Notes: generated by a model from the letters alone, not told the origin. Positions 661 through 52,914 are shown, numbered from the stretch's first letter. The stretch is DNA of 64,000 bases from Haliotis rufescens (GCF_023055435.1 NW_025964201.1:2542001-2606000); one strand, 5' to 3'. Numbers and translations are program-made.

Positions 661-3600
661 CTACGTGTTTATATTGACCTTGGCATGTCCGTGGACATCC
701 TGTATGCTGGTGTAGTGGACATGGTCCGAGCAGGCAACGAGGCTTTGTTCAGTGCAGAAGACAGTGCTATATGTCGTGTCCATTAAACCGCTGTAAGGCC
801 TCGCAGACTCGGTGTGATCACCTGACTGCCCCACGTGACCTAGTTGTGAGTACGTGGGCTCCTCTCTCTGATCAGGTACCACTGCGGTATTCCTGGATGG
901 TTTAATTGCCTTGCTGAAATAAAACATATAACTGTTAAAGGAGAAAACTCTTACAGTAGCACGTTATGACTACAACTACAACAATATGAGGGGAGGTGAA
1001 ATTGGGTTTAACGTCGCGTCCAAGATTATTGCACTTATATAGCGACGTGCATGTACGTGTGTGTGTTTGTGTGGCTGCTTGTACTAGTCCGGACTGATGC
1101 CGATTTATAGTGCTAGCTCACTGAGTTACCATGCCGCAGTTTAACATGAATACCCCACTCAGACACAGTATACTGACTCCGAGCCGACCAGTCCTTCTTT
1201 TAGCCCCTTAATGCCGAACGCCAGACAGGGTAACAACAAGTACCATCTTAAAACGTCTTTTGGTATGACGCGGTCGGGATCGAACCCCGGACCTTCCGCT
1301 CTCCGGGCGGACGCTACAACAATATGAAATGGTATGATGTTGAGAGATGCGGTGTCTTTTCGAGGCGTTCCTGGCCTTTCTACCTATCTGCATGAACCAA
1401 TAATATGTCAATAGTCATCAGCAAGAGGAAAGTGACAACAAACATCAGTACGAGCTGAATAGTGACAGGATACATCAACAGCAAGTGATTAGTGGCAAGA
1501 AAAGTCAACAGCAAGTGACTAGTGGCAAGAAAAGTCGACAGCAAGTGATTAGTGGCAAGAAAAGTCAACAGCAAGTGACTAGTGGCAAGAAAAGTCAACA
1601 GCAAGTGACTAGTGACAAGATACATCAACAGCAAGTGACTAATGACAAGAAACATCAACAGCAAGTGACTAATGACAAGAAACATCAACGGCAAGTGACT
1701 AACGACAAGAAACATCAATACCAAGTGACTAGTGACAATAAACATCAACAGTAAATGACTAGTGACAAGAAACTTCAACAGCAAGTGACTAATGACAGGA
1801 AACATCAACATCTTGTGAGTAATGACAGTAACTTCAACATCTGGTGAATAGTGACAGTAACTTAAACATCTTGTAAATTGTGACAGTAACATCAACACCT
1901 GGTAAAAAGTGACAGTAACATCAACATCAGATGAATAGTGACAGTAATTTAAACACCTTGTAAATAGTGACAGTAACTTTAACATCTTGTAAATAGTGAC
2001 AGTAACTTAAACATCTTGTAAATAGTGACAGTAACTTCAACATCTTGTAAATTGTGACAGTAACATCAACACCTGGTAAATAGTGACAGTAACATCAACA
2101 TCAGATGAATAGTGACAGTAATTTAAACATCTTGTTAATAGTGACAGTAACTTAAACATCTTGTAAATAGTGACAGTAACTTAAACATCTTGTAAATAGT
2201 GACAGTAACTTCAACATATTATAAATAGTGACAGTTACTTCAACACCTGGTGACAGTAACATCAACATCTTGTAAATAGTGACAGTAACTTCAACATATT
2301 GTAAATAGTGACAGTAACTTCAACATCTGGTGAATAGTGACTGTATAGTATGACCAGAAATAATTGAGAATTTTAGGGATATGTTTAAGTGGATATCTAG
2401 TATAAAAAAACACTGACCAGCTATCAAGTGCTTGGTTTCATTCAAGAGAGACAACCCAGTTAATCCTATTTCATTAGTTTGTCATGATCAAGAGCTATCC
2501 CCCTTTGTTTACTTGCTAGCAGACGTCATTTTCAGTGATCCTCAGTATGGATGATTTAGAGAAGAGGAGGTTGATTTTAGAGTATTAAAACAAGGACATC
2601 AGATCAGCTAAAGTGATTTCAAGTAGAACAGGCATCCCTTTGTCCACTGTTTATCGTGTTTTGAAAAATATTGAAAAAGGGGATGGCATTGAGCACAAGA
2701 GAGGCGCAGGTAGGCCCAGAAAATTGACAGTCGGTGACAGGAGGCGGCTTGGTATTCTTGTTTCTAAAAACAAACGAAGGAGTTAAGAAAACTTAAGACT
2801 GGATATGATTGATAGAGGAACTGTGGCTGTCTGTAAGGAGACAATTAGAACTGAGCTGCATGCAGTAGGTTGGGAGAAAAGTCGGGGAATTCCATCACCG
2901 ATCATGAAACCTGAACAAAAGGAGAGAAGGTTGAACTGGTGCTTAGAGCATAGAAATTTTAACAGGGACAATGTGATTTTCTCAGATGAAAGTTCTGTGT
3001 GGCTGTTTCCTAATACACTAAAATTCTGGACCAAACAAACTGAAAAAACTTTGTATCAGCACCCAAAGTACAGTCCAAAATTCCACGTGCGGGGTGGCAT
3101 ATCTGTGTTAGGGGCAACGCCCATGTGTGTATTTGAAGGAAATATGAACATTGAGCGGTACACAGATATTCTCGAAGGACATTTACTTCCATCTGCTCAA
3201 GTATTCTATGGAAATTCTTGGATTCTCCAGCAAGACAACGACCCAAAACATCGTTCAAAGCATTCTCAGGCCTGGTTTCGGACCCACAATATGACACTAC
3301 TAGACTGGCCAAGCAATAGCCCTGTCCTAAATCCAATAGAAAATGTTTGGGGGCTTATGAAGGAAAGTGTCAATAAAAAAATCTGACAAATATTGCTGAA
3401 ATGGAAGAAGAGGTGGTCCGAAAGTGAGACAGCATGAACCACGACTTTCTAACTTCTTTGATCAGCAGTATGCCCCGCCGCCTTGAAGTCTGCATTGCTG
3501 CCCATGGTGACTTGACAAAATACTAAGTGTTCACCTGTCTTTGAAGCTGGAGTTATGTTGTACTAATATTCACATTAAATTTTAATACGTGAGTAATGAG

Positions 3601-15737: not shown

Positions 15738-18700
15738 TCAACATTCTGTGTTACCGCGTATGTACATATGCCCCCCCTCCAGGTGGTCGGAGATGTTGGT
15801 GTAGATGTTGTTGCTGCCATTGGTGTAAGTGTGGCTGCCGGTGTGACTGCCGGTGTGACTGCCGGTGTTACCGCCGTTGTTGCTGTCGGCGCTGCTTACA
15901 GTGTTGTTGCAGATGTTGGTGTCGGAGTCAGGACGCCCATCTGGGTCCGATGACTCGGAGATGTCACATGGTTCCAGTACATGGTCCACCCCGTGATCAT
16001 AGTAGGTATAAGTGGCATCTGTTTCAGCTCCGTTAGTTTTTCTTCTGCGTTTTACTATTTTGCTGAAAGAGAAGACAACATCTTTGAAATGTGACGTATA
16101 TTGGACATATGAATTATAAATATGTCATATAAATAACAACTAAGTTGAAAATATGATATAATGTTCATATGTCGTGCTTTCTACTTGCTGTTATGTCCCT
16201 GTTCCTGGACGAGTACATCACGATATCACTCACCAACAGACTACACTCAGAACAAACACAACAGCACCAACAGCACATGCCACAATCAGTGTCATCTTGG
16301 TCTTCCCTGAAAGATACAGATGCGGATAATTATTACGAAAAGTGGTTTTTCAATCAGACAATTTTCTTCAGATGTGGATCGTCTTTTTTTGGACTCTCCA
16401 TGCTACTGTGCGCACCTTGTGTATGTAGGGGGGCAATGTGTGGGGACGACGTAGTGGGGGGAGGTGATGTCGGTGATGTCGGCCCTGTACCTCCGTTGCA
16501 CGTGACTGTCAGGTTGGACACACCTGGAACATCAATCAGCGGAATCATTGCTTTGTATCTGCTTTTTAAAGGAAAATGAAAAACCCATAAAAATCTGTTT
16601 TCCGAGACACCTGAACGTACCTCTGACCTTCAGCCACACCTGTTGACCTTGCTTCCCATATGTTTGAAACGTCACCGTAAAACGTGAAACATTTTCCATC
16701 ACTGGCGTATTGTATACAAAATATCTGTGTGAGAGAGATTGCCAGATAGAGTTGTCTCCCTTCAGTGTTATGTTAGCTCTGACGCCGTCACGATGTCTGA
16801 AGAACAGTTCTAGTATCGTCACCGTCATTGACGTCCCTGTCACGTCACACTGACACGTGTTATATGAGTTCTGTGATTCGTATGGGTAATTGGAAGATGA
16901 AAGATACAGAGTAGAGTCTTCCGTGGAGGAGGTTGTGGTGCAGCTGCAGATATCTATGGGCGATTCTGTAAATATACAACCCGTCCATTTCAATCAGCGT
17001 ATCTCATGCAAACTAAACCAACGTGTCATGTTATTTGTAATATTTCCAAAAAATAATGGACATTAAATATTGGAATGAAGAGGTTGAAGAGTATTTCAGA
17101 TTTATCACAGCATGTCTGTTTGATGTGAGAGGTGAGGTGAGGTGGGGTGGGGTTTAACGTCGCGTTCAACATTATTTCAGTTTCGACGTGTGTCTGTGTC
17201 TGTGTGGCTGATTTAATAGTGCTACTCCACTGAGATACCACGCAGAAGTCTAACATGGATACTCCACTCAGATGAAGTTTTCTCCAATCCGACATGTATT
17301 TGTTTCATCTCCTTAATGCCGAACACCCACCAAGGTAACAACAAGTATCATCTTTGTTCTGTACCATCAACGTCTTTTGGAATGACACTACTAGCGGATC
17401 GAACCACCGACCTTCTACTCTCCGGACAGACGCTCTAGACTAGTTCACGGAGGAGAGCCTGATGTCGAAAAGAAAATTAACAAGAATATGATCCAGTATC
17501 TCAATAAGTGTAAATCTTACGAAGCAACGATCAACGGATTCTGGAAATACTATGAGACTCAGCACGTACACTCGAGGCGCTTTTAGACCGGGAGGTCGCC
17601 CTTCCCACCCAATAGATATAGGATGGTCATGTATCACTCATATGAAACATTTTATCTTGGTTATTCGTGTATTGATGTTTGAAAACTACCAACCGTTGAT
17701 ACACTGGTATGATAATGTCACCGTATATGACGTCGTATTTCCACACTTGTGAGTCAGCCAGAAGCTCCAGATGTCGTGGTGGCAGACCGACACTCCGACG
17801 CAGTTTGTTGTCAGCCCTTGTTTCTGAGTCTCCTGCAGATATTCACACGTGTCATCTTGTGTGACACATCCTGGTGACGTCTTCCTGTACAGGACGCGGA
17901 CCAGACGGATCCTGCCAGGGTGCCCGCACTCAAGCCTCACAGACCCGCGGGGCAGGTTGCTGCAGACCTCCTTCACCTCGACAGACCCAACTGCAATGTA
18001 AATTGAGATTATTTAGACCTGCTACACCTGGACAGGCCTACCTGCAATCTGAAGTGAGGTTATATAGACCTCCTTCACCTGGACAGATCCACATGCAATG
18101 TGAAGTGAGGTTATATAGAACTCCTTCACCTGGACAGACCCACTTGCAATGTGAAGTGAGGTTATATAGACCGCCTTCACCTGGACAGACCCACTTGCAA
18201 CGTGAAGTGAGGTTATATAGACCGTCTTTACCTGGACAGACCCACCTGCAATGTGAGGTGAGGTTATATAGACATTCTTCACCTGGACAGACCCACCTGC
18301 AATGTGAAGTGAGGTTATATAAACCTCCTTCACCTGGACGGACCCACCTGCAATGTGAAGTGAGGTTATATAGACCTCTTTCACCTGGACAGATCCACAT
18401 GCAATGTGAAGTGAGGTTATATAGACCTCCTTCCCCAAGACCGACCCACCTGCAATGTGAAGTGAGGTTATATAGACCTCCTTAACCTCGACAGACCCAC
18501 CTGCAATGTGAAGTGGGGTTATATAGACCTTCTTCACCTGGACAGATCCAACTGCAATGTGAAGTGAGGTTATATAGACCTCCTTCACCTGGACAGACCC
18601 ACCTGCAATGTGAAGTGAGGTTATATAAACCTCCTTCACCTGGACAGACCCACCTGCAATGTGAAGTGAGGTTATATAGACCTCCTTCACTTGGACACCT

Positions 18701-19387
18701 TAACGCTGTCAGCACGATGCGATGCAACGACATAATTGCACGCGCATATGATACATAAGATTAATTAATACCGTATATGTTACGATTCCAATATAGTGTA
18801 ATGCTAAATTGAAAGAACACATGCAAGCATTTTAATTTCTCAATCAAGAAAGATCAGTATTTTTAAAGAATTAAACGTAATATTGCAAAAAGGCAAATAC
18901 CAGAGTGGAAAACTATGATGGCTAACGTTCAAAACACAAGCCATGTGTGACATACGCCGTAAAATACCATCACTGTGAACATCACGGCTGGTGTTGCACT
19001 CAGCGAATCTTCTACTTGACATTTCAATAATGAGCCATTGTAATACATGAGTATGTACAGAAATGCGTCTACATGAGAAATATGCTGAAACTCATCGTCT
19101 GTGTTGTACAAGTGGCATATTATGTCACTAATCAACACGAGATACATACCGATTCGTAGTGGTCTATATCATAACTTCGAGCTGAATTGAGATAACAGGT
19201 TTGGCACTTTCTCTGTTAAATATCACAACTCGGGGTCACTGAAGACTAATGTCAAATTGTAGTGCCATCCATAAAAGATTCAATGACATCACACAGAAGA
19301 CACCTGTTCGTCAATCTGCAACTCACCTGCCACGAAACATCTGATGTAGCCCAGGATGAACAGAGTCTTCGCCCACAGTAGATGCAT
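15738..19387 (-). CDS. Gene 2: SUEL-lectin-like + CUB-like single-pass receptor (~402 aa; 6 coding exons: 19387-19327, 17990-17694, 16965-16621, 16523-16416, 16306-16234, 16062-15738)
   Basis: In-frame GT-AG joins (phases 1,1,1,1,2; 1209 nt). Signal peptide MHLLWAKTLFILGYIRCFVA, SUEL-like VCSN..LECGHPGRIRLVRVLYRK..VTLSYQC, CUB-like LYLSSSNYP..TCQCDV..VWLKV, P/T-rich stalk, TM MTLIVACAVGAVVFVLSVVCC followed by the basic stop-transfer KIVKRRRK, and tail with YTYY, YTNG, IYTNI. Confidence 0.85.
17129..17437 (-). mobile_element. SINE family B
   Basis: Similar to 988-1316; (CCTCA)n tail. Confidence 0.75.
17965..18698. repeat. 51-bp minisatellite (~14 units) derived from the gene 2 intron 1/exon 2 junction
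   Basis: The minus-strand unit TATATAACCTCACTTCACATTGCAG|GTGGGTCTGTCCAGGTGAAGGAGGTC matches the real acceptor TTTACATTGCAG|TTGGGTCTGTCGAGGTGAAGGAGGTC at 17990. Confidence 0.9.
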
Positions 19388-19623
19388 GTTGACCTGTCCA
19401 GCTGGCGTTTACATGGCAAGTCTGTCCGTACTACAGTGGAGATCTCACTGGGCCGCCCACAGTAGATGCATGTTTCCCTGTCCAGGTGGCGTTTACATGG
19501 CAAGTCTGTCTGTACTACAGAGGAGGTCTCACTGGGCCGCCCACAGTAGATGCATGTTGGGCTGTCCAGCTGACGTTTACATGGCAAGTCTGTCCGTACT
19601 ACAGAGGAGGTCTCACTGGGCCG
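19370..19623. repeat. 84-bp x3 tandem repeat including the gene 2 start codon
   Basis: Units start at 19370, 19454 and 19538; each carries ACATGCATCTACTGTGGGCG on the minus strand. Confidence 0.9.
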
Positions 19624-28300: not shown

Positions 28301-31300
28301 TGCCATATCAAATCGGCCAAGACTCATTTTTTAAAGGAGAGGCTATCTGAACGACCACTGCATCGAGTGTATGTGCAATTTGTTGAGAAGATCAGCAATC
28401 CTGCAGAGTCCTTTGCTTGGATGAAGTCGTCTGGACTGAAAAGTGAAACAGAAGGCTTTCTGTTTGCTGCTCAGGACCAGTCACTTCCAACTCGAAACCG
28501 TCAATGTGTGATTTTGCATCAAAATATGAATATGAAATGTAGATTATGCAATTAATTTAATGAGACTGTCCAACACATTGTCAGTGGGTGTCCAGCTTTG
28601 GCACAGACAGAATATCTTAAGCGACATGACGGGGTGGCTCGATCATTTTATTACCGTCTTCGCCATGCTTGTGGTTTTGACACAGAGGTCCACCCATGGT
28701 ACGACCCGGAATATGAAGAGGGCATCATGGAAAATGATGAATACAAAATTCTTTGGAATAGGCCCATTGACAGCCTCAGCCTCTGCATTTTTTTTATTTT
28801 AATCTGTAAATAATAATAATAATGAGGAAAGGAAAAGGAATTCATTGATAATGAAACGTCTGTGAATTTGACAATGTTACTTCTTACATCATATGAAAGA
28901 ACGTATCATAATCTAGACAAATGTCCTGGTCTGTGTACAGCAAGGGATAGGAGACCTGGTGGTAAGCAGCCAGTCACACCGTGAAACACACGTACCCGTC
29001 ACACACTCATATGACAGTGTCACGATATATGACGTTGTGGGTCCACACGTGTCAGTCAACCAGAAACTCGAGATTCCCTGCAGGCAGGATGAAGCCCCTT
29101 GGCAGTCAGTCCGCAGCCCTTGTTTCTGAGTCTCCTGCAGGTATTCACACGTGTCGTCCTGTGTGACACATCCTGGTGACGTCTTCCTGTACAGGACGCG
29201 GACCAGGTGGATCCTGCCAGGGTGCCCGCACTGCAGGCTCGTGGACGTCTCGGACTGATTGCTACATACATGCCTGGACAACAGTTCACCTGAAACACGG
29301 TGGAGTCGTTTTGAGTTTGTTTGTTGAGTCCACTAAAATACAAATATGTCTCGGTATCACTGTCTAGGTGTTATACACATATGTGTCTGTATAACTGTCT
29401 TGGTGTTGTCAAACTGATATACGGGGCGGTCGGGTAGCCTAGTGGTTAAAGAGTTCGCTCGAAGACACGGGTTCGATTCCCGACATGGGTACAACGTGTG
29501 AAGCCCCTTTCTTGTGTCCCCCGCCGTGATATTACTGGAATATTGCTAAAAGCGGCGTAAAACCATACTCACTCACTCAAACTGATATGCACTAATGTTA
29601 TAAAGTGTAGTAACATCTATAAAAACATGAGGGTTGAGACACACAGGCAAGACGCCGGCATCCCAATGGCGCTCCCTTTCTTGCTGATCTGTTTCTTAAT
29701 GCTCATGAATCAGAATTTCTGCTCGGATCAAAATCGCAAGGGAATTTGCCCAAGAAGTAACATAAGTGTCGCCGGGTATACATTTAAAACACGTATTTTC
29801 ACATGACTTAGCTCTCTCTGTCCGTTTACGTACTCTTCATCTCTTACTCCTACTCCTGATTGTCTGACCAGCTGTATCTCGTGCACATACCCGGGGTGTG
29901 ATGTGGACACTTTAAATTGTCACTTTTTGTCACGCCACAGCCGAGGGAAGACCTTCTTGCTCCCTCGACTCAACATCAATTCATATTGATGCCATTTATA
30001 TCTTTTACAGATTTGTACCCTTATCTATCTGCTTTCTTTATGGTACGCTAGTTGATAGAAAGGTAACGCGATCGTAGAAACTAAATCATAAATGTAATCA
30101 ATTGTGAATATTCTACTCCATTAAAAGGCATCGCGTTGCACGAGATTACCAATTCACTGTATGCATGTCCTATGTTAATCATGCATATATTATATTTAGG
30201 AGATCAACATACTGTGTTTTCAATGTAGAGCTAGGTTACCTGTAGATTTAACCCCACTAAATTGAATTTGGAACCGAACGCGCAGCGTGAGGCTTCAAAT
30301 GTTAAATTTAGCGCGGTTAAATCTACAGGTAACCTAGCTCTACATTGAAAACACAGTATGTTTATCTCCATTCTACCATGACTAAATAAAACGCGAACTC
30401 TTTGATGTTAGCAAATATACTGAGTGAAGCGGCATTGGTTGAGTTCAGTGTTTTGAGTGGGTTATCGATCTGAATTACGGAATCACCGAACAAAATGTGG
30501 CGCTGTATATACTCAAGCAGTTTGTTTACACCGTAATACTTCACTGGAACATATGACAGGCATTGAAAGCATATAAGCACGGCAACTTGCTAAGCTAACA
30601 TGAGGTGGGCATCCCTTAAGAAAACAAAGCAAGCTTTGCAAGGCTTTCGCTCTACATCGCAAACGATATGACGTCACAGTCGTATATAGAAAAGCGCCAA
30701 AATTCCAAGCTCTCTGTTGTCTCCAAAACGTAAATACATTCAACACGTCCCATTTTAATTCTGGAAACCCAAAAGTCCAGAAACTCTACGGTCTTTACCG
30801 ACTCTCGGTCAAAGGTATTTACAAAATTAAACATGCTGTTTTCATGGGAACATACCAAGGAAGAAAAAAATTAAAAAAAATTGTTAAAAAACTCAATATT
30901 TACACTTTCTCGCCCATGGGCCTGCCCATGGGCGAGAATATGTTCCATTACTCAAAATTCATGTTTTTGTTTGGCAAATACATTAAATGTATTTATTCAA
31001 GTATCATGACACAAAATTTAACTCATTTTAACTTAATTCAACTATTTTATAGCGATATTGAAATATTTCGCCCATGGGCGAGAAATAGGTTTGGCCCATG
31101 GGCGAGAATATGATCCTTTACTTAAAACTCATGTTTTTGTTTCGCAAATACATTAAATGTAGTCATTCAAGTATCATGACACAAAATTTAACTCATTTTA
31201 ACTTAATTCAACTATTTTATAGCAATATTGAAATATTTGGCCCATGGGGGAGAAAAAGGTTTGGCCCATGGGCGAGAATATTTTCCTTTGCTCAACAGTT

Positions 31301-34300: not shown

Positions 34301-36019
34301 CCTACTGATAACATCCTTATGTATTCACATGAACGCCACACTGATACCGCCCCTATGTATTTCCAGGAAAGCTCTACTGATAGTGCACCTATGTATTCAC
34401 ATTAAAACCCTACTTATACTGCCTCTACGTATTCACATAAAAACCCTACTGATATCGCCCCTATGTATTCACATGAACGTTTTATTGATACCGCCCTTAT
34501 GTATTCCCATAAAAGCAGTACTGATACCGTCCTTATGAATTCACATGCAAGCCCTACTGATACTGCCCCTATGTATTCACATGAACGTTCTATTGATACC
34601 GCCCTTATGTATTCCCATAAAAGTGGTACTGATACCGTCCTTATGAGTTTACATGCAAGCCCTACTGATACCGCCCCTATGTATTCTCATGAACGCCATA
34701 CTGATACCGCCCCTATGTATTCCCAGAAAAGCTCTACTGATAGTGCACCTATGTATTCACATTAAATCCCTACTGATACTGCCTCTACGTATTCACATGA
34801 AAGCCCTACCGATACTAACCCTATGAATTCACATGAAAGCCCTATTGATACTGTCTTAAGTATTCACATAAAAGCCCTACTGATACCGTCCTTGTGTATT
34901 CACATGAAATTCCTACTGATACCACTCCTAGGTATTCACATGAAAGCCCTACTGATACTGCCCCTATGTATTCGGATAAAAGTCATACTTATACCGTCTT
35001 TGTGTATTTACATGAACGCCCTACCGATACCGCCCCTATGTATTCGGATAAACGTCCTACTGATACCGTCCTTGTGTATTCACATGACAGCCATTCTGAT
35101 ACCCTCCCTATAAATTCACATGAAAGCCCTACTGATACTGCCCCTATGTATTCGGATAAACGTCCTACTGATACCGTCCTTGTGTATTCACATGACAGCC
35201 ATGCTGATACCCTCCCTATATATTCACATGAAAGCCCTACTGATACTGCCCCTATGTATTCGCATGAAAGACCTACTGATACTGCACCTATGTATTCACA
35301 TGACAGCCATTCTTATACCCTCCCTATATATTCACATGAAAGCCCTACTGACACTGCCCCTATGTATTCCCATGAAAGAAACCTAATGATACTACACCTA
35401 TGTATTCACATGAAAGCCCTACTGATGCTGCATCTATGTATTCACATGACAGCCCTACTGATACCGTCTTATGTATTCACATGAAAGCCCTACTGATACC
35501 GCCCTTATGTATTCACATGAAAGTACTGTGCAGGTGGTTGTAGGAAGGGATGATAACTGCCAGGTCTACCCTCTGTTGATGGATTGTTTACATTAGTTGT
35601 GTTTTTCCTGATTTGCTGTATTCCCGGATAAGACCTCCTCGGTCTGATGTAGTTTACACCCCGCTTGTTGACGACGTGTACGTCGTGTTGATGTCATTGA
35701 TAGCATGGGCGTATCGATTAGTGAAGACACCGACAGACGAAACCAGTCAACTAGGATTGTATAGATAAAAAATAGTTTGCAACACCTTCATAGCTGATAC
35801 GAGTACTGGCGACTAAATTAACAACAAACGAGTGTATTCGTTACATTTGACACTCATAACTACACCGACATCCTGCATCTGTAGCGTACAGCTACTTGCA
35901 ACAGCAACATCTACCCTCGACAGTTTCTACAAGCAACATGTTAGATTCCTCTACTACTCACCCAGTGACAGGCTTGTGCACAGGCCGAGGATAAACACCA
36001 CATTCGTCCATACAATCAT
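25353..36019 (-). CDS. Gene 3: SUEL-lectin-like + CUB-like single-pass receptor with ITAM-like tail (~394 aa; 6 coding exons: 36019-35962, 29289-28996, 28252-27908, 26721-26638, 26124-26040, 25671-25353)
   Basis: In-frame GT-AG joins (phases 1,1,1,1,2; 1185 nt). Signal peptide MIVWTNVVFILGLCTSLSLG is homologous to that of gene 2 (W..FILG). The CUB-like exon is 345 nt, as in gene 2. TM AVIVGSVVGAVAVIGLLLLVAAVVYF, juxtamembrane CCC, and tail YQRL-x11-YRKL. An extra small exon could be hidden in the N-gap at 26195-26332. Confidence 0.85.
26787..27231. mobile_element. MITE with long imperfect TIRs
   Basis: AAATTAGATCTTAGTTCTCGCTACC..CTGAGGACATCCCATT / AATGGGATGTCCTCAG..GGTAGCGAGAACTAAGATCTGATTT. 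Confidence 0.78.
27600..27861 (-). mobile_element. Family C repeat, near full length
   Basis: Reverse complement matches 52500-52767; (AAAC)n tail. Confidence 0.82.
28268..28823 (+). mobile_element. R4/Dong-like RLE non-LTR retrotransposon fragment in gene 3 intron
   Basis: SFAWMKSSGLKSETEGFLFAAQDQSLPTRN..CRLCN*FNETVQHIVSGCPALAQTEYLKRHDGVA..ENDEYKILWN (CCHC knuckle + RHD motif); flanked by (TAA)n on both sides. Confidence 0.8.
29423..29578 (+). mobile_element. tRNA-derived SINE family A
   Basis: A box TAGCCTAGTGG, B box GGTTCGATTCC, (ACTC)n tail. Confidence 0.85.
30199..30369. repeat. Foldback palindrome / hairpin MITE
   Basis: AACATACTGTGTTTTCAATGTAGAGCTAGGTTACCTGTAGATTTAACC and its exact reverse complement around a partly paired centre. 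Confidence 0.85.
30912..31281. repeat. Tandem duplication of ~175-bp AT-rich unit bounded by CCCATGGGCGAGAATA motifs
   Basis: Two near-identical blocks; the palindromic CCCATGGG recurs six times; probably subterminal repeats of a DNA transposon. Confidence 0.75.
32235..32324 (-). mobile_element. SINE family B head
   Basis: Minus strand CCGTGGTCTAGTGGTAGAGCGTCCGCCCGGAGAGGGGAAGGTAGGGGTTCGATCCCC. Confidence 0.7.
32665..35525. repeat. 36-bp minisatellite (~79 units) in gene 3 intron 1
   Basis: ATTCACATGAAAGCCCTACTGATACTGCCCCTATGT in tandem, with recurring higher-order variant blocks, stops and 1-nt indels. Confidence 0.95.
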
Positions 36020-36039
36020 ACTTAGTTCAGGCAGTCTAC

Positions 36040-42631: not shown

Positions 42632-45600
42632 TCAGCAAATACTGTTGTTCAACTCGAGGCGTGAAGATGTCTCATATATGTCATTATCAACCATATCAAC
42701 ACTGTCAGCAGCTGTCGGCGTGAGGTTTGGGTCCGTGTCCGCTGTCTGGACATTGTCGTACATGTTGTTGTTTGATCCCGTGTCATACAGGTCATTGTCA
42801 ACCATCTGTACTTTACTGTGTGGTTTGACCACAGACTGGTCAGGGTTTGATCCCGTGTCATACAGGTCATTGTCAACCATCTGTACTTTACTGTGTGGTT
42901 TGACCACAGACTGGGCAGGGTTTGATCCCGTGTCACACAGGTCATTGTCAACCATCTGTACTTTACTGTGTGGTTTGACCACAGACTGGGCAGGGTTTGA
43001 TCCCGTGTCATACAGGTCATTGTCAACCATCTGTACTTTACTGTGTGGTTTGACCACAGACTGGGCAGGGTTTGATCCCGTGTCATACAGGTCATTGTCA
43101 ACCATCTGTACTTTACTGTGTGGTTTGACCACAGACTGGGCAGGGTTTGATCCCGTGCCATACAGGTCATTGTCAACCATCTGTACTTTACTGTGTGGTT
43201 TGACCACAGACTGGACAGGGTTTAATCCCGTGTCATACAGGTCATTGTCAACCATCTGTACTTTACTGTGTGGTTTGACCACAGACTGGGCAGGGTTTGA
43301 TCCCGTGTCATACAGGTCATTGTCAACCATCTGTACTTTACTGTGTGGTTTGACCACAGACTGGGCAGGGTTTGATCCCGTGCCATACAGGTCATTGTCA
43401 ACCATCTGTACTTTACTGTGTGGTTTGACCACAGACTGGGCAGGGTTTGATCCCGTGTCATACAGGTCATTGTCAACCATGTCTACAACACTAAACCCCA
43501 TCAGATCAGATGGAGCATACGCTGCGTCAGGTGGGTTAGAAGGTCGACAGAAGCGTGACTGGCACAACTCAATCGTGTCTGCTGCGCCAGGCATGGTCTC
43601 CGAGTTTCCCAATGTTACCATCATCACACTGCCTATGTCGGATACGTGTTCCTGTTCGTCTGTGGACGGGATGTCGAGATTATTGTAACTGATATCGTCA
43701 CGGCCCGTCTTCATAGAATCTGGTTTGTCATCTCCGTGTGACGTGACAGCTTTGTGCCTGAAACAACATGACGTCATATTTCATACAGCGCAGGCCTTGA
43801 TCAACATCGTTCATCGTATTTGCCATAGCTTGGTACATTTTGGTAAAGATATAATTGATGTACATTTTTGTGTATAGAATTCGTAAATACATTTGTACTT
43901 CGACTAATATGAGTAGGCACGTCGTAGTGCATCTTCTGTACACACTTTAGATGGGAAACACTATCAATTAAGTTATGTATGTTTAGAATATCAATATGAG
44001 ATATGATTTTTTGAAATCCGAGGAACATGCTTGCATGGCTATAAGGATGATGGTGATGGTGATGACAACGACGGCAGCGACGAAGGCGGAGACGACGGTG
44101 ATGAGAGGTGGGGTGTTGTCTGCAAGGGAATATAGGTAGTTGCTCTTTGACTTTCACCTTGATAACGACATTACGATGAACAAGAAAACGAGATGTATTG
44201 ATACGAAGCGTGAAGAACGCGGCGTGTCAGCCTTAGGTGGGAAGAGTGTCGTAGGTTAGAGAAGTTCCCTACTGTGGGGCGTGGGGGGAGGGGCACGGGT
44301 GGCCCAGTCGTCTAATTTGCCGCGATTTGCTGTGCAGAGTTGCGTCCCTTGGGCACGCCAGAAACCTATGATCGTGGGTTTGAATCCCGGGTTCGCCCCG
44401 ATTGTGTTTCTAGGTTTGTCAGTACCATACCCGTGTGTCTGGGTTTCACGTGCATCATCTCGGGCTTTCCTCCCACATTAAGCTGACACGCCGTGATATG
44501 ACTGGAATACTGTTAAAAGCGGCGTTAAACCAACTCACTCACTCCCTACTTTGGTGTGTTCTACTTGCACTGAATCATAATCAGGATGAATGCAAACCAA
44601 CGACCAGTGGATCCGGAGGCGGATGAGTGACAACGTCTGTTCCCTGACGTGGGGTGAGGGGGGAATACAAGCCGTGCCCCCATCGTTATGTCTGTTCCCT
44701 GACGTGGGGTGAGGGGGGAATACAAGTGGTGCCCCCATCGTTATGTCTGTTCCCTGACGTGGGGTGAGGTGGGAATACAAGCCGTGCCCCCATCGTTATG
44801 TCTGCTCCCTGACGTGGGGTGAGGGTGGGAATACAAGTGGTGCCCCCATCGTTATGTCTGTTCCCTGACGTGGGGTGAGGGTGGAAATACAAGCCGTGCC
44901 CCCATCGTTATGTCTGTTCCCTGACGTGGGGTGAGGGTGGGAATACAAGTGGTGCCCCCATCGTTATGTCTGTTCCCTGACGTGGGGTGAGGGTGGGAAT
45001 ACAAGTGGTGCCCCCATCGTTATGTCTGTTCCCTGACGTGGGGTGAGGGTGGGAATACAAGTGGTGCCCCCATCGTTATGTTTGCTCCCTGACGTGGGGT
45101 GAGAGTGGGAATACAAGTGGTGCCCCCATCGTTATGTCTGCTACCTGACGTGGGGTGAGAGTGGGAATACAAGTGGTGCCCCCATCGTTATGTCTGTTCC
45201 CTGACGTGGGGTGAGGGGGGGGGGGGGGGGGATACAAGTGGTGCCCCCATCGTTATGTCTGTTCCCTGACGTGGGGTGAGGGTGGGAATACAAGTGGTGC
45301 CCCCATCGTTATGTCTGTTCCCTGACGTGGGGTGAGGGTGGGAATACAAGTGGTGCCCCCATCGTTATGTCTGTTCCCTGACGTGGGGTGAGGGTGGAAA
45401 TACAAGCCGTGCCCCCATCGTTATGTCTGTTCCCTGACGTGGGGTGAGGGTGGGAATACAAGTGGTGCCCCCATCGTTATGTCTGTTCCCTGACGTGGGG
45501 TGAGGGTGGGAATACAAGTGGTGCCCCCATCGTTATGTCTGTTCCCTGACGTGGGGTGAGGGTGGGAATACAAGTGGTGCCCCCATCGTCATGTCTGTTC

Positions 45601-48600
45601 CCTGACGTGGGGTGAGGGTGGAAATACAAGCCGTGCCCCCATCGTTATGTCTGTTCCCTGACGTGGGGTGAGGGTGGGAATACAAGTGGTGCCCCCATCG
45701 TTATGTCTGTTCCCTGACGTGGGGTGAGGATGGGAATACAAGTGGTGCCCCCATCGTTATGTCTGCTCCCTGACGTGGGGTGAGGGTGAGAATACAAGTG
45801 GTGCCCCCATCGTTATGTCTGTTCCCTGACGTGGGGTGAGGGTGGGAATACAAGTGGTGCCCCCATCGTTATATCTGCTCCCTGACGTGGGGTGAGGGTG
45901 GGAATACAGGTGGTGCCCCCATCGTTATGTCTGTTTCCTGACGTGGGGTGAGGGTGGGAATACAAGTGGTGCCCCCATCGTTATGTCTGCTCCCTGACGT
46001 GGGGTGAGGGTGAGAATACAAGTGGTGCCCCCATCGTTATGTCTGCTCCCTGACGTGGGGTGAGTGTGGGAATACAAGTGGTGCCCCCATCGTTATGTCT
46101 GCTCCCTTACGTGGGGTGAGGGTGAGAATACAAGTGGTGCCCCCATCGTTATGTCTGTTCCCTGACGTGGGGTGAGGGTGGGAATACAAGTGGTGCCCCC
46201 ATCGTTATGTCTGTTCCCTGACGTGGGGTGAGGGTGGGAATACAAGTGGTGCCCCCATCGTTATGTCTGCTCCCTGACGTGGGGTGAGGGTGGGAATTCA
46301 AGTGGTGCCCCCATCGTTATGTCTGCTCCCTGACGTGGGGTGAGGGTGGGAATTCAAGTGGTGCCCCCATCGTTATGTCTGCTACCTGACGTGGGGTGAG
46401 GGTAGAAATACAAGTATCGATGTGACCGTGAAGCCTGCTCCCTGACGTATGTCTGGCTTGGAATACAATTGATGCGCCTACCGTTATCCCTGTCCCCTGA
46501 CGTGGGATGTGGGGTATCTGGGGATGTCAGGCTGGAGTTCAGGGCCGTCCATGTTGATCCTGACGGAACGGTTGTACCCGTAGCTGTAGTCTCGGTGCTG
46601 TAGACATCAGTGGGTTCATGGTTTGTTGCAGAGTCAGTTTTCCCTGTCGATGCTGTCCCACTGTTTGCTGTTACTGATACTGTCTCGGTCGTTGTTGTAC
46701 CACTGTTTGTTGTTACTGATGCTGTTTCGGGCGATGTTGTCCTACTGTTTGCTGTTACTGATGTCGTCTCGGTTGTTGTTGTGCTGCTGTTTACCGTTGC
46801 TGATGGTGATGGTGATGCTGATGATGCCCCACTACTGCTGGATTCAGACGAGGAATCCGTGGATGTCGGTCCGTTTGATTGAGAAGATGGTGCCAGTGTT
46901 GACGTCGTTCCACCTTACAATTACACATTGGTAATAATTTGCCGACAGCTGCTTTATCACAGGTATTTTGATGGTGGAAAGTACTCGTGATTAACCCAAT
47001 GCTAGAGTCTCAGCTCATAATTCTTCGTCGGTCTAAAGGGAAACTGTTAAAATTGATTCGACTTACCTTATATCTACAAAACTAAGATGTACCCGAGACG
47101 GGCCATAATGCCCTCATTGTGTTCTACAGACACTGCACACATCGCCAAACTGAAACATTTCAGGCGAGTACATTGGCCTTCATTGCAGTAAATCATCGCC
47201 AGGGGGTCACATACACGTAGCTCGTCAGGGGATCTTATACATGTAGCTCACATCGTCAGGGTGTCTTATCAATGTAGCTCACATCGTCAGGGTGTCATAT
47301 CAATGTAGCTCACATCGTCAGGGGACATTATATACGTAGCTCACATCTTCAGGGGGTCATATATATGTAGCTCACATCTTCAGGGGTTCATATACATGTA
47401 GCTCACATCGTCAGGGGGTCATATACATGTAGCTCACATCGTCAGGGTGTTATATACATGTAGCTCACATCGTCAGGGGGTCATATACATGTAGCTCACA
47501 TCGTCAGGGTGTTATATACATGTAGCTCACATCGTCAGGGGGTCATATACATGTAGCTCACATCGTCAGGGTGTTATATACATGTAGCTCACATCGTCAG
47601 GGTGTCATATAAATGTAGCTCACATCGTCAGGGTGTTATATACATGTAGCTAACATCGTCAGGGGGTCATATACATGTAGCTCACATCGTCAGGGTGTCA
47701 TATACATGTAGCTCACATCGTCAGGGTGTCATATAAATGTAGCTCATATCATCAGGGGGCCATATACATGTAGCTCACATCGTCAGGGGGTCATATACAT
47801 GTAGCTCACATCGTCAGGGTGTTATATACATGTAGCTCACATCGTCAGGGGGTCATATACATGTAGCTCACATCGTCAGGGTGTCATATACATGTAGCTA
47901 ACATCGTCAGGGGGTCATATACATGTAGCTAACATCGTCAGGGTGTCATATACATGTAGCTAACATCGTCAGGGTGTCATATAAATATAGCTCATATCAT
48001 CAGGGGGCCATATACATGTAGCTCACATCGTCAGGGGGTCATATACATGTAGCTCACATCGTCAGGGTGTTATATACATGTAGCTCACATCGTCAGGGGG
48101 TCATATACATGTAGCTCACATCGTCAGGGTGTCATATACATGTAGCTAACATCGTCAGGGTGTCATATAAATGAAGCTCATATCATCAGGGGGCCATATA
48201 CATGTAGCTCACATCGTCAGGGGGTCATATACATGTAGCTCACATCGTCAGGGTGTTATATACATGTAGCTCACATCGTCAGGGGGTCATATACATGTAG
48301 CTCACATCGTCAGGGTGTCATATACATGTAGCTAACATCGTCAGGGTGCCAAATACATGTAGCTCACATCGTCAGGGGGTCATATACATGTAGCTCACAT
48401 CGTCAGGGGGTCATATACATGTAGCTCACATCGTCAGGGTGTTATATACATGTAGCTCACATCGTCAGGGTGTTATATACATGTAGCTCACATCGTCAGG
48501 GGGTCATATACATGTAGCTCACATCGTCAGGGTGTTATATACATGTAGCTCACATCGTCAGTGGGTCATATTTATATAGCTCACATCGTCAGGGTGTCAT

Positions 48601-51600
48601 ATACATGTAGCTCACATCGTCAGGGTGTCATATACATGTAGCTCACATAGTCAGGGTGTCAAATACATGTAGCTCACATCGTCAGGGGGTCATATACATG
48701 TAGCTCACATCGTCAGGGGGTCATATACATGTAGCTCACGTCGTCAGGGTGTCATATATATGTAGCTCACATCGTCAGGGGTCATATACATGTAGCTCAC
48801 ATCGTCAGAGCGTCATATACATGTAGCTCACATCGTCAGGGTGTCATATACATGTAGCTCACATCGTCAGGGGGTCATATACATGTAGCTCAGATCGTCA
48901 GTGGGTCATATTTATGTAGCTCACATCGTCAGGGTGTCAAATACATGTAGCTCACATCGTCAGGGGGTCATATACATGTAGCTCACATCGTCAGGGGGTC
49001 ATATACATGTAGCTCACATAGTCAGGGTGTCAAATACATGTAGCTCACATCGTCAGGGGTATATAAATGTAGCTCACATCGTCAGGGTGCCATATACATG
49101 TAGCTCATATCGTCAGGGGGTCATATACATGTAGCTCACATCGTCAGGGGGTCATATACATGTAGCTCAGATCGTCAGTGGGTCATATTTATGTAGCTCA
49201 CATCGTCAGGGTGTCAAATACATGTAGCTCACATCGTCAGGGGGTCATATACATGTAGCTCACATCGTCAGGGGGTCATATACATGTAGCTCACATAGTC
49301 AGGGTGTCAAATACATGTAGCTCACATCGTCAGGGGTATATAAATGTAGCTCACATCGTCAGGGTGCCATATACATGTAGCTCATATCGTCAGGGGGTCA
49401 TATACATGTAGCTCATATCGTCAGGGTGTCATATACATGTAGCTCACATCGTCAGGGGGTCATATACATGTAGCTCACATCGTCAGGGTGTCATATAAAT
49501 GTAGCTCACATCGTCAGGGTGTCATATACATGTAGCTCACATCGTCAGGGTGTCATATACATGTAGCTCACATCGTCAGGGGGTCATATACATGTAGCTC
49601 ACATCGTCAGGGGGTTATATACATGTAGCTCACATCGTCAGGGTGTCATATACATGTAGCTCATATCGTCAGGGTGTCATATACATGTAGCTCACATCGT
49701 CAGGGGGTCATATACATGTAGCTCACATCGTCAGAGCGTCATATACATGTAGCTCACATCGTCAGGGTGTCATATACATGTAGCTCACATCGTCAGGGGG
49801 TCATATACATGTAGTTCAGATCGGACAATAATACATCGTAAAGAAAATATCACAATATACTTAGGAACACGGGTATATAAGAGATAAAGGTTTCTGTACT
49901 CGTCACTAAGCTTAATGAGTTTAATTCAACATGTTATGATTTAATGTTCAAAATTTTAAGATTGGTAGATACAAACTTTTTGGAAGATATAAGTAGTTTC
50001 GATCGTTTAATGTAACTTTAAAGGCTTGTTCTGGTTTAGAAACTAACCGTAGAGTACTATTGTTTTACTTCTAAGTATACGTAACTATCCAACATATCCA
50101 ATAACACAATAGTGGAAGGATAATTTTAATTCCTAACCGTACTTTACTGTATATATCATTCATTCTCAGTGCAATTTATTCCTGATTTTGTTCAAGATTG
50201 GCCGCTGCTTGTGTAATATCTTCAGTAGTTTTGTCAGAATTTAAAAGATTACAGCTGTAGGAATGATTATTTGTTTCTTTTTCCTCATCACGTAGTCTAG
50301 TTTTTATTGTTTCGAAAATTTTCGTCAAGATATAAATATAAAATGTTCAATAAATTTATTCGGTATTGTATTATCATCTTTTGATTTGACTTTATTTAAA
50401 AACTTCTAAAAAGTCTTCAGGGGATATATTTTAATTTTGATGAAATATGTCTTGTAAGGTTTCTTTGTGTTGACGAATATATACTGAAGGCCAACGGAAA
50501 CTTTACCATTGTTTTAAATCCCTCTAGTTTTAAACCACAAAGATCGATGCATGAAGGAAATGTATTGAAAAGATCAAATCGGACGAGGAATGTCATCTGC
50601 GTAACGCTGAGCTGTCAAATGTTAACGGCGGCCAGCAGTGTTCTCTCCTGCCCACAAATTCCTCCGTCTTAGGACTAACAATGTTTACAGGTCTTTACAG
50701 TGTTGACACTACCCATAGTGTACAGTACATTCACCCTGTGCACTCAAAAGAACCCACTCGTCCGATGGCAGATGACCAGATGTTGGGAACATGAATACGT
50801 ACATACCCCCGAAACACAAGGGTCAAAACTTGTGGTGTCATCCTGGGCAAGTGATTTAGTTCAAATGTGCCTTTGGGAATTGGTACCCGATATGTAAATT
50901 GGATGTAAAAACCCTCAAGCGGCCGTAGGCAGTTTGGGTTGTATTCTCCCTTGGGAGTTGAGAATGATATCTGGAATACAAACGGATCAGCTGGTCGAGG
51001 AACAAAAAAAATATAAGAACCGGCTTTCAGCAGCGAAGACGACCATCTGCCAGTTACGTCGCTGCCAACGACATCTCGCTGTCCGGCCCATCTCAAACTA
51101 TGACGATGATGCTGCGCTGTCAATAATTGTTCTCAGCTGGGTCTGTAAGTCCTTACTCCTCGAGACCTGAGTCGACTGGCCACTGTCTGTCGATTTACCC
51201 TAAGACTTTCGTCGCTGATGACATCATTATCAGGAATCGATTCCGAAGATGCAAAGTACGCAAGTACCGGTCTTCATTGGGCGTAGTTACCCTAGGGTCT
51301 GCTTGTTCTTGGTCTGTCTGATGTCTGCCCGGTCTGTCTGTAACGTTTCATCAGGTTAGTTACAGCAACACGGGATCAACGAAAAGTTCTAGCAATGTGG
51401 GCATTGGTGGCTCCCATCTGTATCATACTCAGGTCCGCTCGCATTGTTCGGTTGTCAGTCGTGGCATCCCCTTGCGTTTTTCTTATCGGTGTGAGTGTCT
51501 CACATGCTGTCCGTATTATTTATATACCCTTGCACGTGTAGTTTCGGCTGCCCAAGTAGCACGTGTTTTTCACTTTATGGCATTTTTTACGAAAAATACA

Positions 51601-52914
51601 TGCCGTGGACGTGTATCAAATTCTGCACGGAGAAATGTTGTTTTTGGACGCAGTGTGAGTGTTTTTGAATTTTTGCAACTTTATTTTTAAAGCGTCATTT
51701 TTGGTCGTCAGTATCCTTATTATATACATACATCTTTTTATAAGCTTAGTTTCGTCCCGTGATAAGTGTACATTTGATGATGATTTGAATTATTAATTAT
51801 TCCTGTGAGAATCTCGCGTTTGGTATTTACAGATCAGCCATAAAAGATTTAGGTTCTAATTCAGATGTTACATGACTTTTATTCATTTCAAATACCTTGA
51901 TGACGTAATTGTCATACATTTTATAATCAGGGGCGTTAATTGTTCTGGCATGAAAATCTCCCATGTGTGTAACGAAGTCACGCTTAGTAAACATTAATTT
52001 TCTGATACAGACTTTTCAAATTCATAAAATGTAACCGCAGAGACATATTTAGATCATTCAGTGAGAATTGTATAAACCATTCCTGAATAAATGTCTTTAT
52101 CTAAATTAAAAGGGGTTTTGCATAGTTTAATCCACAATACAGTGTCACAAGATTCTTGTGTAAGTTCTTCACATTTTATATAGTAAGTGCTTCCTTACGC
52201 TCTCGGGGCCTGGACGTCAGCTGGCATTGCATACCACTCATATCAGTGCCGCTCTGTGATGACGTCACGGTTTCAAGAACATTGTATAAAAAAGTGTTAC
52301 ATTGTTCATATTTCTGCTCCGCTAATAGACTAACTGTTCAAATTGACTCCAGGAAACCCACATTTTCTAACTTTTCACAGTTAACTTTAACTTTAAGTGT
52401 TTCTCATTATAATAATTCAAGAAGCATTAGCTCCAAGATATGTTGTTAAATTTTAAACTATTGAAATCAGAAGAACGTCTTAATACTACAACGAATAACA
52501 GACCCGTGAAGATCCCGGGATAGAATAGGTCTTCTAAACCCATGCTTGCCGTAAAAGCGACTATGCTTGTCGTTAAAGGCGACTAACGGGATCGGGTGGT
52601 CAGGCTCGCTGACTTGGTTGATACATGTCATCGATCCCAATTGCGTGGATCGATGCTCATGCTGTCAATCACTGGATTGTCTGGTCAAGACTCGATTATT
52701 TACATACCGCAACTATATAGCTGGAATATTGCTGAGTGCGGCGTTAAACAAAACCAACCAACCAACAACGAATAACAGGATTATGTTTAGTATTCTATAT
52801 CCATGATAGCAAACAATCAAATGGTATATACTGAAAATGAAGAGATAAATATACACAAAACTCACCTTTTGTCGAAATCACCAAAAACGTAATGATGTTA
52901 AAAAACGTCAACAT
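42632..52914 (-). CDS. Gene 4: mucin-like single-pass membrane protein with tandem NxxY-repeat cytoplasmic tail (~563 aa; exons 52914-52866, 46913-46482, 44119-44035, 43757-42632)
   Basis: Signal-peptide exon MLTFFNIITFLVISTK (accATG, GTGAGT donor). 432-nt S/T-rich exon (GGTTSTLAPSSQSNGPTSTDSSSESSSS..TTETTSVT..). 85-nt TM exon PLITVVSAFVAAVVVITITIILIAM, the same length as the gene 3 TM exon. 1126-nt last exon with ISYNNL and 25-aa repeats. Total 1692 nt in frame, but this requires a GC donor at 44034-44033; additional exons between 46914 and 52865 cannot be excluded. Confidence 0.72.
42771..43480 (-). repeat. Coding 75-bp VNTR (9.5 units, MVDNDLYDTGSNPAQSVVKPHSKVQ) in the gene 4 tail
   Basis: Period 75 (42771, 42846, 42921...), no indels or stops, embedded in unique in-frame sequence. 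Confidence 0.92.
44288..44545 (+). mobile_element. SINE family D
   Basis: Homologous to the outer element at 40557-41046. Confidence 0.78.
44635..46470. repeat. 56-bp minisatellite (~32 units) derived from the gene 4 mucin-exon donor junction
   Basis: GTCTGTTCCCTGACGTGGGGTGAGGGTGGGAATACAAGTGGTGCCCCCATCGTTAT in tandem; aligns to 46460-46510. Confidence 0.93.
47195..49822. repeat. 31-bp minisatellite (~84 units)
   Basis: GTAGCTCACATCGTCAGGG(T/G)GTCATATACAT in tandem. Confidence 0.95.
50482..51713 (-). mobile_element. Degenerate Tc1-family element, same family as 20593-21640
   Basis: Left end CTGAAGGCCAACGGAAACTTTACCA matches the TIR at ~21613-21640; remnant LTAQHHRHSLRWA matches LTAQHRRLRLRWA; right end TTTTTGGTCGTCAGTA. 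Confidence 0.7.
52500..52767 (+). mobile_element. Family C repeat, full length
   Basis: GACCCGTGAAGATCCCGGGATAGAATAGGTCTTC head; GCTGGAATATTGCTGAGTGCGGCGTTAAAC + (AACC)n tail. Confidence 0.82.

Follow-up and report, generated by a model that had tools for sequence, protein, structure and literature searches.

A tandem array of putative SUEL-CUB membrane receptors with variant tyrosine-bearing tails in Haliotis rufescens

A 64,000-nucleotide stretch of the Haliotis rufescens genome (GCF_023055435.1 NW_025964201.1:2542001-2606000; C423:2,542,001-2,606,000 by our contig name, in the 1.33-Gb assembly), here called the window, carries on its minus strand three apparently intact paralogues, genes A, B and C, that form part of a tandem array of predicted type I membrane-glycoprotein genes. 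The parts follow the same order in all three: a signal peptide, a domain of the SUEL/RBL fold, a divergent CUB fold, a short stalk, a transmembrane (TM) segment and a cytoplasmic tail of 83-107 residues. We estimate a probability of about 0.6 that these proteins are cell-surface recognition or adhesion receptors that act through tyrosine motifs in their tails. Such receptors would probably bind a protein or glycoconjugate ligand with the ectodomain, and their tail tyrosines would dock SH2 proteins when phosphorylated, act as AP-2 sorting signals, or do both. The tails vary, and the variants would link similar ectodomains to distinct outputs: one resembling the ITAM (the tyrosine-based activation motif of immunoreceptors) in C and a paralogue, X; one resembling the corresponding inhibitory and switch motifs (ITIM and ITSM) in A; and long tails with NPxY/NDxY motifs in a further paralogue, Y, and its relatives. 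As judged from sequence, the family joins known folds and motif types in a combination that is undescribed and lineage-specific.

Results

Gene structure and family range

Searches were made with single exons or database proteins, and exon translations were checked one by one against database proteins. An all-against-all comparison of open frames revealed two exon types, each in three copies within the window, and a scan with family hidden Markov models (HMMs) recovered exactly these SUEL and CUB copies and no others. The exon types and gene models are as follows, with the supporting evidence in brackets.

7620-7946, 17689-18012 and 28916-29332, minus strand: open frames of the first exon type, SUEL (all-against-all comparison)
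7091-7522, 16535-16993 and 27903-28286, with a fragment at 23982-24113, minus strand: open frames of the second exon type, CUB (all-against-all comparison)

8971..9046, minus strand: gene A, tentative exon 1 with signal peptide (signal-peptide scan: ATG, hydrophobic core, phase-1 donor AAG/gttagt)
7646..7945, minus strand: gene A, SUEL/RBL-fold exon, phase 1/1 (splice sites; Pfam SUEL_Lectin positions 1-80/80, 24.2 bits)
7123..7473, minus strand: gene A, CUB-fold exon, phase 1/1 (P0005 residues 76-191; family HMM 146.7 bits)
5880..5951, minus strand: gene A, stalk exon carrying a conserved Cys, phase 1/1 (splice sites; P0005 residues 193-215)
5397..5450, minus strand: gene A, extra Ser/Thr-rich stalk mini-exon, phase 1/1 (AG/GT sites; P0005 residues 217-233)
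5171..5270, minus strand: gene A, TM exon, phase 1 in and phase 2 out (splice sites; P0005 residues 235-266)
661..913, minus strand: gene A, tail exon and stop, with four Tyr, all YxxΦ, including TTYSTV and VHYTSI (P0005 match; shuffles)

19327..19387, minus strand: gene B, exon 1 with signal peptide, phase-1 donor CAG/gtgagt (scan; 17/20 identical to P0039 N-terminus)
17694..17990, minus strand: gene B, SUEL/RBL-fold exon, phase 1/1 (splice sites; 95/98 identical to P0039)
16621..16965, minus strand: gene B, CUB-fold exon, phase 1/1; the folded sequence (AlphaFold2 model, structural matches)
16416..16523, minus strand: gene B, stalk exon, phase 1/1, preceded by a 97-nt intron (splice sites; P0039)
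16234..16306, minus strand: gene B, TM exon, phase 1 in and phase 2 out (splice sites; P0039)
15738..16062, minus strand: gene B, tail exon and stop, with TYTYY, two YxN sites and HMYIRG (splice sites; motif scan)

35962..36019, minus strand: gene C, exon 1 with signal peptide, lying 6.7 kb upstream of exon 2 with a 36-bp satellite in between (P0033 residues 1-19)
28996..29289, minus strand: gene C, SUEL/RBL-fold exon, phase 1/1; the folded sequence (AlphaFold2 model, structural matches)
27908..28252, minus strand: gene C, CUB-fold exon, phase 1/1 (P0033 residues 119-232)
26638..26721, minus strand: gene C, stalk exon, phase 1/1 (splice sites; P0033)
26040..26124, minus strand: gene C, TM exon, phase 1 in and phase 2 out (splice sites; P0033)
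25353..25671, minus strand: gene C, tail exon and stop, with YQRL-x11-YRKL, ITAM-like (splice sites; P0033; shuffles)

In A, B and C, phase 1 holds for every ectodomain intron and phase 2 for the intron that follows the TM exon. The SUEL, CUB and stalk exons are phase 1/1, the TM exon is entered in phase 1 and left in phase 2 through a ...TT/gtaagt or TG/gtgagt donor, and a single tail exon lies behind a ttcag/CAA acceptor. GT-AG sites occupy homologous positions across the three genes, and RefSeq "uncharacterized protein" models and H. cracherodii orthologues share these junctions exon by exon. The six exons of gene C equal residues 1-19, 21-117, 119-232, 234-260, 262-288 and 290-394 of P0033 (XP_046328415.2), with one split-codon residue between neighbours; the H. 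cracherodii model P0002 takes an alternative acceptor at 25650 for the tail exon. From its CUB exon onwards gene A equals RefSeq P0005 (XP_048239359.1), and this comparison revealed the extra 54-nt stalk exon at 5450-5397 that an earlier model lacked. The gene B exons before the tail are each 85-97% identical to the H. cracherodii orthologue P0039 (17/20, 95/98, 111/114, 33/35 and 22/23 residues in turn), which bears out the signal-peptide exon predicted at 19387-19327.

Two runs of N interrupt the window, at 8179-8695 and 26195-26332. No reading frame spans either, and both are intronic, the first provided that the tentative exon at 9046-8971 is correct: this gap lies upstream of the gene A SUEL exon and would fall within intron 1. 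By eye, the tentative exon resembles the N-terminus of paralogue Y (P0044); it was not recovered by tblastn and is absent from P0005. The second gap lies in the gene C intron between stalk and TM exons, an intron whose junction is unchanged in H. cracherodii orthologue P0002, which comes from an independent assembly. Because paralogues A and X have an extra stalk exon in that intron, the gap may hide a cassette exon of gene C.

The RefSeq models of genes X and A and the model of A's H. cracherodii orthologue (P0043, P0005 and P0035) all begin at an internal methionine, MLHVISV. Gene X has an upstream signal-peptide exon homologous to that in P0037 (C423:2,538,812-2,538,945), and all three models are probably truncated at the 5' end.

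The array continues beyond the window. A genome search located genes Z, Y and X upstream on the same contig, which holds at least six family genes, and two further copies on the 35.6-kb contig C281; genome-wide, the CUB-type exon gave 16 matches and the SUEL-type exon 8. Between exon 1 of gene B and the tail of gene C lies a remnant of a lost family member.

23982..24254, minus strand: CUB-like relic exon with an in-frame stop (one TAG) (HMM match to profile positions 29-61, E 1.5e-11)

A search of 1.84 billion (1.84e9) proteins by profile gave 32 matches. The strong ones (8/32) are all "uncharacterized" Haliotis proteins, from H. rufescens, H. cracherodii, H. rubra and H. asinina. Weak relatives, in which a SUEL-like domain precedes a CUB-like domain, include Patella vulgata and other Haliotis "mucin-like" proteins, and Gigantopelta aegis also gave a weak match. 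Literature searches yielded no named gene and no paper on these RefSeq loci or on Haliotis SUEL plus CUB proteins.

These results partly sustain the initial annotation, which had described a tandem cluster of four like-built, same-strand genes with conserved splice phases, of lineage-specific character and without a recognised named counterpart. The phase architecture stands on the homologous splice sites and the agreeing proteins, lineage specificity on the confinement of strong matches to Haliotis, and literature and database searches alike yielded no named gene of this architecture. The cluster is real and not a chance pattern, and its extent was underestimated, as the array exceeds the window. 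The common build holds for A, B and C, which share strand and phases, but not for the fourth gene (gene 4), which has neither SUEL nor CUB exon.

The window is rich in satellites and minisatellites, several of which involve family exons. In intron 1 of gene B, a minisatellite at 17964-18697 (51-bp x 14.4, 90% matches) has a unit that copies the SUEL splice acceptor and first codons ('...HIAGGSVQVKEV'); the real exon borders on the last copy only. At 19370-19623 an 84-bp x 3 repeat overlaps the start codon of gene B, and a second 'MHLLWA' start occurs at 19555-19538, so the first exon of this gene also sits within a tandem duplication. In gene X (C423:2,530,270-2,531,430) and the C281 copy (C281:10,589-14,528), the second stalk exon is followed by an intron in which the coding sequence of that exon ('VSISNTTVAVARSSPDSGQGQP') is repeated in tandem dozens of times, a third case in the family of an exon seeding a minisatellite. 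The 6.7-kb intron 1 of gene C contains a satellite at 32668-35523 (36 bp x 79).

Ectodomain folds

The assignment of the two ectodomain exons to SUEL and CUB, made in the initial annotation, holds by fold but not by Pfam threshold. On predicted structures, the first domain can be upheld as a SUEL/RBL fold and the second as a CUB fold, though not as Pfam members.

The AlphaFold2 model of the gene C SUEL exon had a predicted local distance difference test score (pLDDT) of 88. Its top 7 matches among 48,161 chains were RBL-type folds (Z 7.2-8.0, root-mean-square deviation about 3 Å, 82-88 residues aligned), including the latrophilin lectin, SUL-I, CSL3 and two Plasmodium chains, and the next chain reached only Z 5.5. 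The family profile matched the lectin domain of C. elegans LAT-1 with an E of 0.009, and the A, B and C exons cover positions 1-80/80 of Pfam SUEL_Lectin (PF02140). Eight cysteine columns, which would form four disulfides, are invariant in 10 family members and in six exon copies. Sugar-binding RBLs have eight cysteines and are defined by the motifs YGR, DPC and KYL (PMC10817417). Alignment to the LAT-1 lectin domain showed that the abalone proteins do not keep these motifs, having Y[KQR][NK], xxC and [ST]Yx instead, and sugar binding by the SUEL domain is therefore doubtful. By analogy with the latrophilin domain, it may bind protein.

The model of the gene B CUB exon (pLDDT 81, predicted template modelling score 0.78) matched CUB domains in all of the top 14 of 48,161 chains (Z 8.7-10.3, 100-108/114 residues aligned), among them C1s CUB2 (Z 10.3), Kremen (9.7), MASP-1 (9.6), cubilin (9.2) and neuropilin (9.1). 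Agreement was weaker with Foldseek, whose best matches were mostly CUB at E about 1e-3. Canonical CUB domains have four conserved cysteines in two disulfides. The abalone exon has three invariant cysteines (positions 6, 37 and 39), with the fourth in the stalk exon; the first pair could match canonical C1-C2, and the second canonical pair is absent. When nine members were run against Pfam, the best results were CDCP1_CUB_6 (E 0.096) and CUB_M02D8_5_2nd (E 0.2), neither significant, and a profile including full-length proteins returned only noise from PDB sequences.

Gene conversion of the SUEL exon

Synonymous (dS) and nonsynonymous (dN) divergence was estimated per exon by the Nei-Gojobori method. 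Between A and X, dS came to 0.12 for SUEL, 1.24 for CUB and 1.9 for the tail; between A and the C281 copy, 0.02 in SUEL and 1.2 in CUB; and between B and C, 0.56 in SUEL, 1.86 in CUB and 2.3 in the tail. For SUEL, the exon of A shares 87-95% identity with those of X and the C281 copy; when Y is included the range is 81-95%, compared with 49-54% for the CUB exon. At the DNA level, A and the C281 copy share 95% identity over 509 bp (window 8143-7639) and A and X share 94% over 281 bp (window 7919-7639), with at most 70% identity or no detectable homology outside these tracts. Identity between B and C (82%) is confined to 17938-17701. Low SUEL dS and discrete tracts amid old paralogues show that the SUEL exon has been overwritten by gene conversion. 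It has been homogenised repeatedly among paralogues with different tails as the CUB exon and the tail diverged, and such exon-specific conversion provides a clean natural example of modular receptor evolution.

Genes X, Y and the C281 copy are young duplicates (dS 0.02-0.06). Among them the CUB exon gives a dN/dS of 1.3-1.9 from few changes and without a significance test, so we make no claim of positive selection. This ratio, together with the restriction of strong relatives to the genus Haliotis, would suit fast-evolving, genus-restricted surface proteins that serve gamete, larval-settlement or tissue recognition rather than immunity. SUEL-type lectins were first discovered in eggs, and the reproductive proteins of abalones are known to evolve rapidly. 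We consider a non-immune role of this kind improbable. It concerns the place of action, and is thus compatible with either signalling or sorting by the tails.

Cytoplasmic tails and tyrosine motifs

The tails of A, B, C and X can be aligned through a common membrane-proximal block, K-x-I/V-x-x-x-R ... T-Y-x-x-[YFL] ... H-V ... D-x-x-E-S, and a distal Y-x-x-L ... D-H-[ED]-Y-x-x-L is common to X, the C281 copy, the X-type proteins of H. rubra and H. asinina, and C. The initial annotation had called the tails barely alignable, a description that the homologous proximal block and shared distal tyrosine positions rule out; they are better viewed as having diverged from a single ancestral tail, with tyrosines that are homologous and lie mostly in YxxΦ context. 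The ITIM/ITSM-like, YxN and ITAM-like motifs that it named are all present. In gene A, VHYTSI fits the ITIM consensus and is homologous to the YxxL that ends the ITAM-like motif of C and X, TTYSTV fits the ITSM consensus and is homologous to PYTNQ of X, and ITAM-like spacing is broken because of an 11-residue insertion. TYSQL was also considered as an ITSM and rejected, its threonine being at -1 rather than -2.

Motif frequencies were compared with shuffles of each tail's own sequence. In gene A all four tyrosines lie in YxxΦ (p 0.001), and the joint presence of ITIM and ITSM gave p 0.007. In gene C the corresponding values were p 0.004 for YxxΦ at 3/3 tyrosines and p 0.001 for YxxL-x11-YxxL. 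The YxxL-x9-YxxL of gene X gave p 0.012, with YxxΦ at 3/6 tyrosines, and the two YxN sites of gene B gave p 0.13, with YxxΦ at 1/6. Long-tail relatives carry a [DE]ND[LMVI]Y motif once or twice, and H. rufescens Y has ENPLY, which is NPxY-like. No tail contains a canonical ITAM (YxxL/I-x6-8-YxxL/I), C and X fitting only a loose spacing of 6-12, and the hydrophobic cores of the TM segments hold no charged residue.

Conservation of the motifs was uneven. The X-type distal block, IY.GLSPY.N.DHEYG.LH.YS, keeps its four tyrosines and its YxxL-x9-YxxL invariant in H. rufescens, H. rubra and H. asinina. In the X-type orthologues of the latter two species the membrane-proximal tyrosine is cysteine, which weakens the signalling role proposed in the initial annotation. 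Among B-type tails, TYTYYD and HMYI are kept in four species; the YxN sites occur only in H. rufescens and H. cracherodii, being absent from the H. rubra and H. asinina orthologues. All four tyrosines of A are kept in H. cracherodii P0035 and the motifs of C are intact in P0002, the H. cracherodii proteins differing by 3-8% per domain. Tyrosine-motif conservation, presupposed by the initial annotation, therefore stands for the X-type motif and fails for the YxN sites of B.

Because the strongest motif signal is the generic YxxΦ (4/4 in A, 3/3 in C, 3/6 in X), these proteins could be endocytic, scavenger-type or adhesion receptors whose YxxΦ motifs, and NPxY/NDxY in the long tails, are clathrin-adaptor sorting signals with no activating or inhibitory logic. 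The ENPLY and DNDLY motifs of long-tail members and the presence of cubilin among the structural matches of the CUB model point the same way. CUB and lectin ectodomains are frequent in endocytic receptors such as cubilin. We nevertheless judge a purely sorting role unlikely: the X-type block retains four tyrosines at fixed spacing, including a YxN, which is more than sorting needs, and B has only one of its six tyrosines in YxxΦ. For the same reason, fixed spacing with an embedded YxN, SH2 docking is favoured over sorting within the receptor interpretation that we prefer.

If docking does occur, tandem-SH2 partners may be available. A candidate Syk/Shark-like locus on contig C1 (C1:61,697,081-61,707,200) has two SH2 exons followed by tyrosine-kinase exons, with full SH2 exons at 61,697,081 and 61,700,977; a kinase exon that reads HRDLAARN follows about 4 kb downstream. 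A candidate SHP-like locus (contig C212:3,143,085-3,158,915) has two SH2 exons followed by a protein tyrosine phosphatase (PTP) exon. At the level of exons, the genome thus appears to encode Syk-like and SHP-like tandem-SH2 genes. In molluscs, the oyster immunoglobulin-superfamily receptor CgIgIT2 has been reported to signal through an ITAM in haemocytes (PMC11999971). A literature search for mollusc ITIM, ITAM, Syk and SHP returned vertebrate papers only.

A bolder proposal is that the genes are paired receptors. A, with its ITIM and ITSM, would recruit an SHP-type phosphatase and damp ITAM-like X, the C281 copy and C, which would recruit Syk/Shark; through gene conversion their lectin domains would stay similar, letting both sides recognise a common ligand. 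Several observations accord with this: the ITIM plus ITSM consensus of A and the YxxL-x11/x9-YxxL of C and X, with the shuffle probabilities given above; the invariance of the X motif in three species; a SUEL exon of A close to those of X and the C281 copy (dS 0.02-0.12) in genes whose remaining exons have dS above 1; and the SH2-SH2-kinase and SH2-SH2-PTP loci. There is also a vertebrate precedent, since CEACAM1 and CEACAM3 are a pair bearing ITIM/ITSM and ITAM-like motifs in their own tails (PMC5112662). However, because the ITIM tyrosine of A is homologous to the last YxxL of the ITAM-like motif, the supposed opposition comes down to a few flanking substitutions and the 11-residue insertion. 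The ITAM-like spacing is 9-11 residues rather than the canonical 6-8, no member has a charged TM residue, and A and X share only about 50% identity in their CUB domains. An A-type gene turned up in just the two closely related Californian species, and in H. rubra and H. asinina the YxN sites of B and the proximal tyrosine of X-type proteins are absent. We therefore hold paired signalling to be a long shot, and equally doubtful that molluscs independently built a paired-receptor system of CEACAM1/3- or FcγRIIB/IIA-like logic on a non-immunoglobulin RBL plus CUB scaffold.

Neighbouring gene 4 and other sequence in the window

Gene 4 shares the minus strand with A, B and C.

42632..52914, minus strand: gene 4, predicted single-pass mucin-type protein (signal-peptide, Ser/Thr-rich, TM and tail exons; internal exon ends uncertain)
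52914-52866, minus strand: gene 4, exon 1 with signal peptide, phase 1
from 46913, minus strand: gene 4, Ser/Thr-rich exon, phase 1
44119-44035 (GC donor) or 44119-44027, minus strand: gene 4, TM exon, phase-1 entry
43757-42632, minus strand: gene 4, tail exon, phase-2 acceptor

A phase-2 exit from its TM exon needs a non-canonical GC donor at 44035, the sole GT donor (44027) being phase 1. HMM scans found no SUEL or CUB exon in gene 4, which rules it out as a fourth family member by ectodomain, and a database search with its tail matched no protein. The tail contains a variable-number tandem repeat at 42770-43480 (75 bp x 9.5, 98% identity) with ten [DE]ND[LMVI]Y (DNDLY-type) motifs, and this motif is the only tie of gene 4 to the long-tail SUEL-CUB relatives. 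Its introns hold satellites at 44635-46415 (56 bp x 32) and 47194-49823 (31 bp x 85).

About 10 kb of satellites lie downstream at 53312-64000 (20 bp x 126, 77 bp x 6, 30 bp x 152 and 29 bp x 55), where minus-strand stop-free frames of up to 675 residues are probably a by-product of the repeats and not a gene. Three mutually similar open-frame fragments, at 2589-3383 (plus strand), 20652-21227 (plus strand) and 39148-39762 (minus strand), lie in introns or between genes and look like DNA-transposon transposase remnants.

Discussion

A secreted N-terminus, two cysteine-rich folds suited to binding, a single TM segment and tail tyrosines retained despite fast divergence agree with a surface receptor that would work through tyrosine motifs. 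The interpretation of A, B and C as receptors acting through tail tyrosines has to be set against several findings that weigh on the other side. None of the H. rufescens proteins returned by the searches made corresponds to gene B, and its TM segment lacks four residues (TVIV) present in H. cracherodii P0039. The 5' end of gene A lies beside a gap and its candidate exon 1 is tentative. In Pfam, the SUEL copies of the window score 24.2, 16.3 and 19.7 bits, under the gathering threshold of 31.4 bits that a more distant relative, P0013, exceeds (34.4 bits), and no window exon matches Pfam CUB (PF00431 and relatives) at E 0.1 or better. The structures behind both fold assignments were predicted, from shallow alignments that held 9-10 sequences. 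The motif p values are uncorrected for six motif classes and four tails, and motif conservation in H. cracherodii is weak evidence because the proteins are about 92-97% identical.

If the genes do encode signalling receptors, they would constitute a lineage-specific surface-receptor family in abalones, a farmed and endangered group whose recognition receptors are little known apart from the general innate toolkit. Should the tyrosines prove to be sorting signals and nothing more, the products would be ordinary, unannotated endocytic or adhesion proteins.

Several known systems offer points of comparison. Kremen and neuropilin likewise place a CUB fold beside the membrane (Z 9.7 and 9.1), and CDCP1 and DCBLD2 resemble the abalone proteins in having several tyrosines in the cytoplasmic tail. 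In the abalone, by contrast, the CUB domain is joined to an RBL domain and has only three cysteines; its Pfam CUB matches are not significant, and no orthology to these four vertebrate proteins was found. The N-terminal domain shares its fold with the RBL domains of latrophilin and C. elegans LAT-1 and with SUL-I and CSL3 (Z 7.2-8.0, 85-88/97 residues aligned). As in latrophilin, an RBL domain with eight cysteines stands at the N-terminus of a membrane receptor, but the abalone domain is without YGR, DPC and KYL and scores below the Pfam threshold, and the predicted receptor is single-pass, not an adhesion G-protein-coupled receptor.

With respect to tails, the closest vertebrate parallels are CEACAM1/CEACAM3 and FcγRIIB/FcγRIIA. 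There too, clustered paralogues have an N-terminal domain kept similar by gene conversion, with an ITIM and ITSM in one tail and a non-canonically spaced ITAM-like motif in others. The abalone genes differ in having an ectodomain that is not of the immunoglobulin type, a strongly diverged second ectodomain and tails homologous along their length, and they belong to a mollusc. Oyster CgIgIT2 has an immunoglobulin-domain ectodomain and belongs to an unrelated family, yet like the predicted abalone proteins it is a type I mollusc receptor with an ITAM-type tail (PMC11999971).

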